In this document: one piece after another, positions 51,522-56,204 of the stretch
Layout: each line of letters starts with the position of its first letter
Numbering within the stretch: the first letter of the stretch is position 1
Assembly: GCA_026770705.1 (NCBI GenBank)
Contig: JANJGN010000052.1
Span: 2,852,001 to 2,916,000 of the forward strand
Reading direction: 5' to 3'
DNA length: 64,000 nt
Source of the DNA: Isurus oxyrinchus
Lineage: Eukaryota
Made by a program: the position numbers and the translations under genes
The notes under the pieces: generated by a model
The model's input: the letters and a program-made list of their open reading frames with translations, nothing else
Told to the model about the DNA's origin: nothing
Databases searched by the model: none

Positions 51522-53492
51522 CTACAGAGAAATGGAAACAGAAGACATCCTCACATTATTTACTGGCACTGATAGGGTTAAATTATTGAGCAGCCTCGCT
51601 AGTGTCAGTCTTGTCTCAGTGGGTTTAACCCTCTCTCTCATGTCATCTGAAAGAAACCACCTATGGCAGTGCAGTGCTCCCTCAGTACTGACCCCCCCGA
51701 CTGTGCAGCACATCCTCAATAGTGACCCTCTGTCAGTCTCACACTCCCTCTGTACAGTGCAGCACTTCCTTAGCACTGACCCTCCAACAGTGCAGCACTC
51801 CCTTAGCACTGACCCTCTGACAGTGCAGCACTCACTCAGTACTGACCCTCCATCAGTGCAGCACTCCCTTAGCCCTGACCCTCTGACAGTGCAGCACTCC
51901 CTCAGTACTGACCGTCTGACAATGCAGCACCCCCTCAGTACTGACCCTCCGACTGTGCAGTCCCCCGCCGGTACTGACCCTCTGACAGTGCAGCACTCCA
52001 AGACTGACCGTCTGACAATGCAGCACCCCCTCAGTACTGACCCTCCGACTGTCCTGCCCCCCCGCCGGTACTGACCCTCCGACAGCTCGGTAATTTCTCA
52101 ATTATGCCTGGTGGTCCTTTTAACTCAGAGCTGAGAGTTGCAGAGAATCGAGCACACATCCTGAACTGACACTTGCAGTGCAAGTACTGGGAGCGCGCTG
52201 GTCATTATCATGCTGCTGTCTGTGGGATCTTACTGTGCGCCAATGGCTGATTCTTTTCCCACAGTACATCAGTGACCTCACATGAAAGAAAAAAAGCACT
52301 TGATTGTCTGCGAAACACTTTGGGACGTCCTGATGTGTTGGAAGGCGCTAGAGAAATGCAAGTCCTCTTTGTCTTTCACTTGATCCTCTAAGGTGTCTGT
52401 TGATTAACCAGCCTCTCGGTGTTTGATGTAGGCCTGGTTATAAACAGTTAGAAGGATCAAATATCAAAAATGCTTTGGCTGACAGTCAAACCGATTGTGC
52501 ATTCGGAGAGATTAGATACGGTCTGCACACAATGACTCCAGTCTCTGGCACTGACTGCCGCCTGGGGTCTCCCTTCCACATAACACTCACAACTTGCATT
52601 TACACAGCGCCTCTGATATTGCAAAATGTCCCAGCCCACATTACCGGAGCGTAAATCAGAGAGAAGTCTACCACTGAGTCACATATGGAGATATTAGGGT
52701 TAGGTGACCAAAAGCTTGGTCAAAGATGTCAGTTTTTAAGGAGCGTCTTAAAGGAGAGAGAGAGAGAGAGGCAGAGAGGTTAAAGGAGGGTATTCCGGAG
52801 CTCAGGGCCCCAGGCAGCTGAAGGCACGGCCACCAATGGTGGAGCGATGGGAATCAGGGGGACCCGGGAGATGCAGTAATGTCAGAGATTTTGGAGGAAC
52901 ATCGGGACCGGAGGAGGTGTTCTCCTGCTCCATATCTCTCTCTCTTCCTCTCATCCACTCCTCCTCTCCCTGTCTCTCTCTCTCCTACTCTTCCGCTCAA
53001 TTGCCCTCTCTCCCAATCTTTCTCTCCTCTCTCCCTTTTCCTGTCTCTCTCCCTCTCTCTCCCTTGTCTCCTTCTCCCACTCTGTATCTCTCCCTCTCTC
53101 TCACACTATTTTTGTACCTTTCGCTCACTCTGTAACTCTCCCTTTCCTGTTAATTTCTCTCTCTTGGACAATCTCTCTTCTCTTTTCACTTTCCCTCACT
53201 CTGCATCTCTTTAATTTCTCCCTCTGTCACTCTCTCCCACCTATGTTCTTTCCCTTTCACCCCTCCCCGTCCCACTCTCTGTCTCTCTCTTCCAATCCCT
53301 CCCTCCCCCATTCCATCCCTCTCTCCGACTCTCGACTCCCAGCCTCTCTTTAACCCACTCCCAGGCTGGATCAGTCTCCCTCTCACTATTCCCGGCGTGG
53401 GTTACATTTAAAATTCCTGTGGGGATATGTTCACTTCCTTGGAATTGCCTCTTCCCAGCTTTGCAAAAAAAGGGGGCGGGGGGGGCTCGATT

Positions 53493-55540
53493 TCAAACAT
53501 GCCTCCTGAGTATAACCGAGACAGACTGCCACTGAAATCAGCTTGAAATCAGAAAACTTTCTGTGGAAGAAACGAGCAGGGAGAAACCTTAAAATAAGGA
53601 ATGAATTTCCACCTACCGTGTCCGGGGAATCCACAGATTTCTCAATCGTCGAAGAACCTAAAGCAGTGTCAACCTGCAAAAAGAAAGAATTTATCAGGGA
53701 GAAAGTGAGAGGAGGATTGAGGGAGAGGGAGATGGAGAGAGAGAGGTACAGGAGAGAGAGGGGGAGGAGGACAGACTTGCATTTCTCTAACGCCTTTCAC
53801 CACATCCCAAAGCATTTCACAGCCACTGAAGGATGTTTTTGAAGTGCACTCACACTGTAGGAAATGTGGCAGCTGATTTGTGCACAGCAAGATCCCACAA
53901 ATAGCAATGTGATCATGGCCTAGATCATCTGTTTTTGGTGATGTTGGTTGAGGGATAAATATTGGTCCCAGGACACCGGGGAGAACACCCCCTGCTCTTC
54001 CTCCAAATAGTGGCTGTGGGATCTTTCACACCCGCCCGAGAGGGCAGACGGGGGACTCGGTTTAATGTCTCATTCAACATTGTTGTGCTCCCTCAGTACT
54101 AACCCTTCGACACAGCAGCACTCCCTCAGTACTAACCCTTCGATAGTGCTGCACTCCCACAGTATTGTCCCTCCGTCAGTGCAGCGCTCCCTCAGTACTG
54201 ACCCTCCGACACAGCAGCACTCCCTCAGTACTGACCTCCGACAGTATAGCACTCACTCAGTACTGTCCCTCCAATAGTGCAACACTTCCACACTACTGAC
54301 CCTGTGACAGTGCAGCACTCCCTCAGCACGGAGTGTTGACCGACGTTATGGGACTGAATTCCCTGGAGTGAGACTCAGACCAGAGATTTAGGTAGGGTTG
54401 TTCCGGCTGGAGGAGGTTACAGAGATAGGGAGGGTTGTAGAGGCTGTAGGAGTTAACAGAGATAGGGAGGGTTCTAGAGGCTGTAGGAGGTGACAGAGAT
54501 AGGGAAGGTTGTAGGGGCTGTAGGAGGTTACAGAGATAGGGAGGTGAGTAGGGGCTGTAGGAGGTTAATGAGATGGGGGGGGTTGTGGGGGCTGGAGGAG
54601 GTTACAGAGGTAAGGAGGGTTGTAGAGGCTGGAGGAGGTTACCAAAATAGATACTGCTGTAGGGGCCACAGTAGGTTACAGAGATAGGGAGAGTTATAGT
54701 GTGGAGAGGACGTTATAGAGTTCATGAGCATTGTAGGGGCTGGAGGAGGTTACAGTGATTCTGAGGGTCGTGGGGCCTGGAGGAGGTTACAGAGATAGGG
54801 AGGGTTGTAGGGTCTGGAGGAGGTTACAGAGATAGGGAGGGTTGTAGGGTCTAGAGGAGGTTACAGTGATCATGAGGGTTGTGGGGCCTGGGGGAGGTTA
54901 CAGAGATAGGGAGGTTTATAGGGGCTGGAGGAGGTTACAGAGATAGGGAGGGTTGTAGGGGCTGGAGGAGGTTACGGAGATAGGGAGTGTTGTAGGGGCT
55001 GGAGGAGGTAACAGAGATAGGGACAGTTGTAGGGGCTGGAGGAAGTTACAGAGATGGGGATTGTTGTAGGGACTGGAGGAGGTTACAGATATAGGGAGGG
55101 GTGTAGGGGTTGGAGGAGGTTACAGAGATAGGGAGGGTTGTAGCGGCTGGAGGAGGTTACAGAGATAGGGAGGGTTGTAGGGGCTGGAGGAGTTTACAGA
55201 GATAGGGAGGGTTGTACGGGCTGGAGGAGGTTACAGAGATAGGGAGTGGCTGAGGAGGGATTGAAAACAAGAATGAGAATTTCAGGGGAAACGACAGAAG
55301 GAAATGATGTTAAATTCATAGAGGGCGACAATATTAAAGGCACGAACATAATAATATCAAACTGCGGAAGTGACCAGTCTATCTGGGTGGTAGATGTAGA
55401 GTCATGTGCAAGAAACACCTCACCCAGAGGGACATCTCTTAGCTTACCCTCGACAAGGAGAAGAAGTGACTCAGCTGCAGGGAGAGCAGCAAAGTCAGAG
55501 TGAACAAGACAAGTCGCCATTTCATCTGGGAGCTTCCCAT
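53493..55540 (-). pseudogene. Three-exon secreted prepropeptide gene with hepcidin-like architecture, stop codon at the propeptide end
   Basis: Exon 1 55448-55540 MGSSQMKWRLVLFTLTLLLSLQLSHFFSLSR|gtaagc. Exon 2 53617-53673 VDTALGSSTIEKSVDSPDT (ttctttctttttgcag / gtaggt). 85-bp intron. Exon 3 from 53531 WQSVSVILRRHV*. All phase 0. Confidence 0.5.
54405..55245. repeat. 36-bp minisatellite array in intron 1 of the prepropeptide gene
   Basis: (GGAGGTTACAGAGATAGGGAGGGTTGTAGGGGCTGGA)-like units. Confidence 0.9.
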
Positions 55541-55611
55541 CTCTGCCTGTCTCTTCTGATCTTCTGGCTCTGCTTTGATGCTTTGGTTTGTAACTAGAGG
55601 AGCTTCCTGCT

Positions 55612-55801
55612 CTTATACCTGAAACACTTGAAGGGGACAGCCGGGGGCGGTTTGCTGTGTGGTATCACACCCATTTCTGGATATTGCAGTGTCGATGTTC
55701 CCTGTCCCACTGGCCTGGGACCAGCAGTAAGGTCACTGGGACATTGACTGTCTGGCGCCGAGAACTGTCAGTCCCTCCGCAACGCCCTTCACCTTGTGCA
55801 A
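55612..55801 (-). promoter_or_regulatory. Putative proximal promoter of the prepropeptide gene
   Basis: TATAAG 55612-55617, GC box near 55641-55650, GTCT+GGCGCC (SMAD/BMP-response-like) 55750-55759, TTGTGCAA (C/EBP-like) 55794-55801. Confidence 0.45.
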
Positions 55802-56204
55802 ATATGTGTTCATATTGTCGCAACACAACATAGCAAAAACAGAGGGGCTGGTTCTTATGTCGGCAAATCAGGTGAAGCGCACGCCCCCTAACCCCTTACT
55901 CCTCTCATTGCTACACTTACTATTTTACAAATTGTGTGCGTTGCTTTTATTTTGGACAAGGGGCCTCGAGGGGGAACTGATTTACGCTGAGGTTTCAGGG
56001 TTAACAGCCATGTCATGTGTTGATCGGTCAGTGTTTACCTTGTGGAGACTGTCTGTCACCAGCTTTGTTCATGGTTTATCCAGGAACATTGAAGGGCATG
56101 AACGTTCTTGCTTTGTATGGAACAAGTCACCAACTGGGTTCAGTCATCGACTCAGACTCACATCAACATAAACTGGCTTCTGACAGGTAAGTTTCTATTA
56201 CATG

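Follow-up and report, generated by a model that had tools for sequence, protein, structure and literature searches.

A probable truncated hepcidin duplicate in a hepcidin/Siglec array of Isurus oxyrinchus

The window analysed here is a stretch of 64,000 nucleotides (nt) from Isurus oxyrinchus (assembly GCA_026770705.1, contig JANJGN010000052.1, positions 2,852,001 to 2,916,000 of the forward strand), and all coordinates given below are positions within it. Its minus strand carries a promoter, a signal-peptide exon and a propeptide exon of the hepcidin type, with Siglec-type genes lying downstream on the same strand. We read this locus, with a probability of roughly 0.8, as a truncated hepcidin duplicate in an amplified hepcidin/Siglec array, the RNA that matches it coming from intact paralogues. 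The locus would thus be the front half (promoter, signal-peptide exon and propeptide exon) of a hepcidin-family gene placed within a segmentally duplicated array, and would have lost its third exon (the one encoding the RxKR cleavage site and the 8-Cys peptide where a copy is intact), with two orphan Siglec tail exons standing where this exon was lost. An earlier description made from the letters alone, hereafter the sequence-only reading, had proposed either a dead or remodelled hepcidin locus or an undescribed secreted peptide of 62 amino acids (aa) on the hepcidin scaffold.

Contigs of three runs were used, namely run X1 from organism A, which behaves as RNA, and runs X11 and X5 from the related organism B. 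The kind of these runs is not on record, and their contigs show presence, not expression level or copy of origin.

Hepcidin identity of exons 1 and 2

Both exons are present on the minus strand with the letters and the codon numbers (31 and 19) given in the sequence-only reading (Table 1). The hydrophobic core of exon 1 spans residues 9-21, the exon 2 acceptor ttctttctttttgcag (..tttttgcag) was graded good, and according to self-BLAST the exon regions are unique within the window and not repeats.

Homology searches were run exon by exon, the exon 1 query being the in-frame open stretch 55612-55448, which matched two isoforms of LOC144671611 from Cetorhinus maximus (basking shark). Isoform X2 of this gene (P0002) is an 88-aa protein composed of MGSSQMKLRLVLFTLTLLLSLQLSHFFSLSK, VDSAVGSLTIEKSVDSPDT and GSLLLREKR-MSHLSVCVYCCGCCNKKGTKKTCGYCCKL, which has the 8-Cys peptide and matches the Pfam Hepcidin family (PF06446) with an E value of 1.5e-11. 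The window is identical to P0002 at 29 of 31 residues in exon 1 and at 16 of 19 in exon 2. Compared with P0003 and P0004, two "hepcidin-2-like" proteins of Scyliorhinus canicula, exon 1 shows 20/31 identical residues, while exon 2 shows 9/19 (P0003) and 12/19 (P0004). The exon borders and phase 0 of the window exons are shared by all three shark hepcidins. As judged by these matches, exons 1 and 2 are genuine hepcidin exons, orthologous or paralogous to those of shark hepcidin precursors, and the hepcidin call of the sequence-only reading is supported accordingly. Pfam scans of the single exon pieces and of the read-through piece, each taken alone, gave no match. Such shark genes are labelled automatically as "hepcidin-2-like" in the databases, and a literature search found no paper on chondrichthyan hepcidin genes in the collection covered.

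RNA matching the locus

The contigs of run X1 match exons 1 and 2 without any listed difference. The predicted splice was observed as a joint between 53673 and 55448 in 11 run X1 contigs, which skip exactly 1774 letters with CT..AC borders on the plus strand, that is, GT..AG on the minus strand. Run X1 depth is 160,000-340,000 across exon 1 and 270,000 across exon 2, compared with about 250-1,200 over neighbouring non-exonic sequence, and at the TATAA it rises from about 4,500 (55623-55723) to 162,000 (55522-55622). As the joint in 11 contigs and these exon depths show, the exon 1-2 splice is real and the matching RNA extremely abundant. In organism B, a short contig of run X5 spans exon 1 alone (55446-55539).

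All the run X1 contigs leaving exon 2 at 53616 (13/13, agreement 1) carry one identical continuation. Read from the G at 53616, a letter that suits the intron as well as the exon that follows, it is GGC TCC TTG CTG CAG CGC CAG AAG AGA ATG G, which translates as GSLLQRQKRM. The corresponding stretch is GSLLLREKRM in P0002 and GSVLLRQRRM in both catshark proteins (P0003 and P0004). By this correspondence, GSLLQRQKRM represents the canonical end of the propeptide, RxKR site included, and the RNA matching the locus is ordinary shark hepcidin mRNA. As this RNA runs into a canonical exon 3 which the window does not hold, the abundant RNA on exons 1 and 2 is best explained as stemming from intact paralogues whose exons 1 and 2 have identical letters.

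The missing peptide exon

The window holds 784 N letters, and the statements of absence made here cover its visible letters. The continuation 30-mer (up to 3 mismatches) and both its 17-mers (up to 2 mismatches) had no match in the window, the hepcidin Cys pattern C..CC.CC....C..CC was found in none of the six frames, and tblastn of the exon 3 part of P0002 against the window gave no match. The absence of a Cys-rich peptide, as stated in the sequence-only reading, is therefore borne out by motif scan, tblastn and mer searches alike. The regular expression for the Cys motif did match FCSCCHFCC at 39357-39374 (minus strand), which was rejected as a chance match in intronic sequence.

In contrast to the shark hepcidin genes compared above, the window locus has no exon for R-x-K/R-R plus MSHLSVCVYCCGCC...CGYCCKL; the site is present as RQKR in the RNA leaving exon 2. 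The locus combines the N-terminal signal and pro homology of a hepcidin with the lack of the 8-Cys mature peptide and of the convertase site. As in a pseudogene, homology to a parent gene goes together with the loss of an essential coding part, with 784 letters masked as N, and the window copy presumably makes no peptide.

Sequence behind exon 2

In the sequence-only reading, the gene was closed by a short second intron of 85 nt and a third exon of 12 codons ending in TGA. Run X1 depth over this third exon is 733-1,173, that is, 200-300 times below that of exon 2, and it stays at about 700-1,200 over 53401-53602, similar to intron 1. The sole run X1 contig covering the third exon (53421-53644) is unspliced and reads from exon 2 across the 85-nt gap, none of the joints listed for run X1 links 53617 with 53531, and the acceptor is weak. 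Exon 2 is spliced to another sequence, which the window lacks, and both the proposed intron and the proposed exon behave in RNA as intron or flank sequence.

The convertase site suggested for this exon reads RRHV and not RxxR. In run X11, the changes 53504 T>A and 53502 C>T convert the second AGG of the RR pair to TGA, so the open reading frame (ORF) is not conserved and the RR pair is lost in organism B through the earlier stop. The TGA at 53495-53493, for which a check in raw reads had been advised, has the same letters in runs X1 and X11. Both runs differ from the window in the homopolymer stretch at 53471-53486, which lies within the interval singled out for the same check. The 85-nt intron with the 12-codon exon is a chance ORF in non-exonic sequence.

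A run X11 contig is collinear with the window over 53368-53644, and the arrangement behind exon 2 is thus found in another organism's data as well. One run X1 contig follows the window to 53450 and continues with 255 unlike letters, so another copy or allele is structurally different there; 53450 may mark the point where copies diverge behind exon 2.

Promoter and intron 1

Both the TATAA and the GGCGCC next to GTCT/AGAC listed in the sequence-only reading were located upstream of the ATG (Table 1). The 64-kb window has a single GGCGCC, a pair of GGCGCC and AGAC is found in just one of its 169 windows of 360 nt, and the motif is identical in runs X1 and X11. By analogy with mammalian HAMP, it may function as a response element for bone morphogenetic protein (BMP). 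The proposed C/EBP-like site, TTGCACAAG, departs from the usual consensus.

Some RNA also lies upstream of the hepcidin promoter, a run X1 contig covering 56000-56127 with a depth of 2,730. A plus-strand ORF in this region (55794-56171) stops 17 nt short of a gtaagt at 56188. The RNA may be a divergent non-coding transcript.

Intron 1 contains a 37-bp tandem array of 23 units (54389-55246) and a 33-bp repeat resembling a short interspersed nuclear element (54088-54326). The 37-bp array is also present, in inverted orientation, at 57977-58148, 2.7 kb upstream of the hepcidin gene.

Siglec-type surroundings

Siglec-type genes lie 5-44 kb downstream of the hepcidin exons on the same strand, their ORF pieces matching V-set, the Ig_CD22 first domain and C2/I-set. 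The location upstream of a Siglec cluster, as put forward in the sequence-only reading, agrees with these CD22/MAG-type matches; the USF2/LSR neighbourhood suggested along with it was not seen. On the minus strand, exon 2 is followed by unique sequence for about 280 nt and then by low-complexity sequence rich in GA (53340-52920). A Siglec 3' unit has left a remnant at 52860-52589, and after it come two tandem units of about 2.9-3.0 kb, each containing a Siglec cytoplasmic-tail terminal exon. A homologous tail exon terminates both Siglec genes of the window (23078-22833 and 2761-2519), and the tail exons carry motifs resembling the immunoreceptor tyrosine-based inhibitory motif (ITIM). The two tail exons next to the hepcidin exons are regarded as orphans because no Siglec body lies upstream of them. 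The orphan tail-exon acceptor, ttctgtttccatttctctgtag followed by GGT, is strong, has phase 0 and is in frame with the donor of hepcidin exon 2.

Region 44201-50730 duplicates 18971-25065 at 92-97% identity and thereby brings a Siglec 3' part with its tail exon to a place that has no Siglec body upstream. Each of these regions contains a run of N letters behind a tail exon (Table 1). As the offset of the run at 47962-48141 equals that of the run behind the Siglec gene tail exon, the former is assigned to the Siglec 3' unit and is unlikely to be the site of a hepcidin exon; both runs probably mask the same element.

Two further isoforms of the basking shark gene have matches in this part of the window. 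The C-terminal part of isoform X1 (P0005) matches 14971-15132, 34264-34443 and 35124-35198 on the plus strand with 67-84% identity, and these stretches are antisense to the 5' parts of the window Siglec genes; either the two species share a conserved set of antisense exons, or the automatic model is a read-through artefact. The tail of isoform X3 (P0001), ..GEVRVTVLNIKAAFD, matches a reverse-transcriptase-like fragment at 2276-2341 (minus strand), and this isoform probably ends in a transposon.

Table 1 Features of the hepcidin locus and of its downstream surroundings in the window
Feature	Position	Strand	Description
GGCGCC with adjoining AGAC	55759-55750	-	BMP-response-element-like promoter motif; GGCGCC at 55759-55754
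TATAA	55617-55613	-	73 nt upstream of the ATG
Hepcidin exon 1, coding part	55540-55448	-	ATG at 55540; 31 codons MGSSQMKWRLVLFTLTLLLSLQLSHFFSLSR; signal peptide; followed by gtaagc
Intron 1	55447-53674	-	1774 nt, GT..AG
Hepcidin exon 2	53673-53617	-	19 codons VDTALGSSTIEKSVDSPDT; propeptide; followed by gtaggt
Third exon of the sequence-only reading, WQSVSVILRRHV-TGA	53531-53493	-	85-nt gap, tttcag, 12 codons TGG..GTT, TGA; intron or flank sequence
Orphan Siglec tail exon 1	51521-51273	-	..LLYANPQVL..TEYAQIRFEHN-stop; 2.1 kb downstream of exon 2
Orphan Siglec tail exon 2	48589-48341	-	5.0 kb downstream of exon 2; 80% protein identity to the first
N run	47962-48141		180 letters; about 5.5 kb downstream of exon 2, some 200 nt beyond the stop of the tail exon
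N run	22466-22603		Behind the Siglec gene tail exon; same offset (about 200-230 nt) as 47962-48141

Hepcidin front half in organism B

The depth of run X11 is even over exons and non-exons, for which reason this run looks like genomic DNA. The only X11 change listed in the exons, of which 55448-55480, the part from 55513 upwards and 53617-53644 were covered, is 55449 C>T; it gives R31K, the residue found in the basking shark. Run X11 contigs over the hepcidin front half (53300-56000) have depths of 1,600-4,100, and some neighbouring contigs have depths of 28-43. There are hints here of dozens of copies of the front-half unit in the genome of organism B.

Alternative explanations

Some points weigh against a truncated duplicate whose RNA comes from elsewhere. 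The RNA contigs are not assignable to a copy, so the window copy may or may not be transcribed, and there is, as stated, no record of what kind X1 and X11 are. Among the 784 window letters given as N, the run at 47962-48141 lies downstream on the strand relevant to hepcidin. It is conceivable, though in our view unlikely, that the truncated copy is itself transcribed and that its exon 2 is spliced in frame to the tail exon at 51521, giving a chimeric RNA of signal, pro and ITIM-tail parts which would most likely be functionless. The promoter and both splice donors are indeed intact, and the tail exon 2.1 kb downstream offers a strong phase 0 acceptor, but the contigs leaving exon 2 in run X1 go to the canonical exon 3 in 13 cases out of 13, and neither a joint nor a loose end towards a tail exon is listed for that run. 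In a word search, no annotated protein of 45-144 aa shared words with the tail exon, which carries little weight. An intact hepcidin gene, its third exon masked in an N run or else dropped or misplaced by the assembly, and the RNA arising from the window locus itself, would account for the fit of the run X1 contigs to exons 1 and 2 without a listed difference and could make use of the 180-letter N run situated 5.5 kb downstream on the same strand. This appears less probable still, given that this N run follows the tail-exon stop by about 200 nt, with the offset seen in the neighbouring Siglec gene, as a part of the Siglec 3' unit would, and that immediately behind exon 2 the contigs of both X1 and X11 follow the window collinearly.

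There is a very small chance that the truncated copy, having kept an active, BMP-responsive promoter and the signal and pro exons, is used as a new gene in a massively amplified hepcidin/Siglec array, giving either a secreted chimeric peptide that includes the Siglec tyrosine-motif tail or some other exon downstream, or a regulatory RNA. We hardly consider credible the 62-aa secreted product ending in WQSVSVILRRHV, proposed as a new peptide on the hepcidin scaffold: its GT/AG borders and open frame are there in the letters, but no spliced contig is listed, the depth lies 200-300 times under that of exon 2, the acceptor is weak, the stop comes earlier and the RR pair is lost in organism B, and there is no Pfam match. 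Of the two possibilities left by the sequence-only reading, the dead or remodelled hepcidin locus agrees with the lack of the peptide exon; the undescribed secreted peptide is unsupported, with a third exon that behaves as intron or flank and an earlier stop in organism B.

Comparison with known systems and significance

The mammalian HAMP gene sits in a USF2-HAMP-MAG-CD22 block. It is a small gene made up of a signal exon, a pro exon and a peptide exon, and the shark family is alike in build. Both HAMP and the window locus have MAG/CD22-type Siglec genes downstream of them on their own strand, and both have a GGCGCC in the promoter. Unlike the mammalian block, the shark block is amplified and rearranged, with no USF2 or LSR seen and with a truncated copy in the window, and the second intron of the shark hepcidin family is not the short one which the sequence-only reading had assumed from mammalian HAMP.

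The window fragment also resembles unprocessed pseudogenes in tandem arrays, which keep the promoter and the 5' exons and lose an essential 3' exon, and like them it sits among segmental duplicates, here of 92-97% identity. It differs from a typical pseudogene in that the retained exons have no disabling change and that their letters equal very highly expressed RNA; as these exons are undamaged and equal to expressed RNA, the window copy would be either young or kept uniform by gene conversion.

For annotation, this means that exons 1 and 2 should be recorded as a hepcidin gene fragment and not as a new peptide gene, and that short "hidden" gene models which follow real exons and rely on GT/AG borders can be false. 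The single truncated copy is one data point in a wider hepcidin/Siglec picture and not a separate discovery. In that picture, the linkage of HAMP with MAG/CD22 appears to be old, and the hepcidin/Siglec array suggests a rapid birth and death of defence-type hepcidins beside immune receptors.

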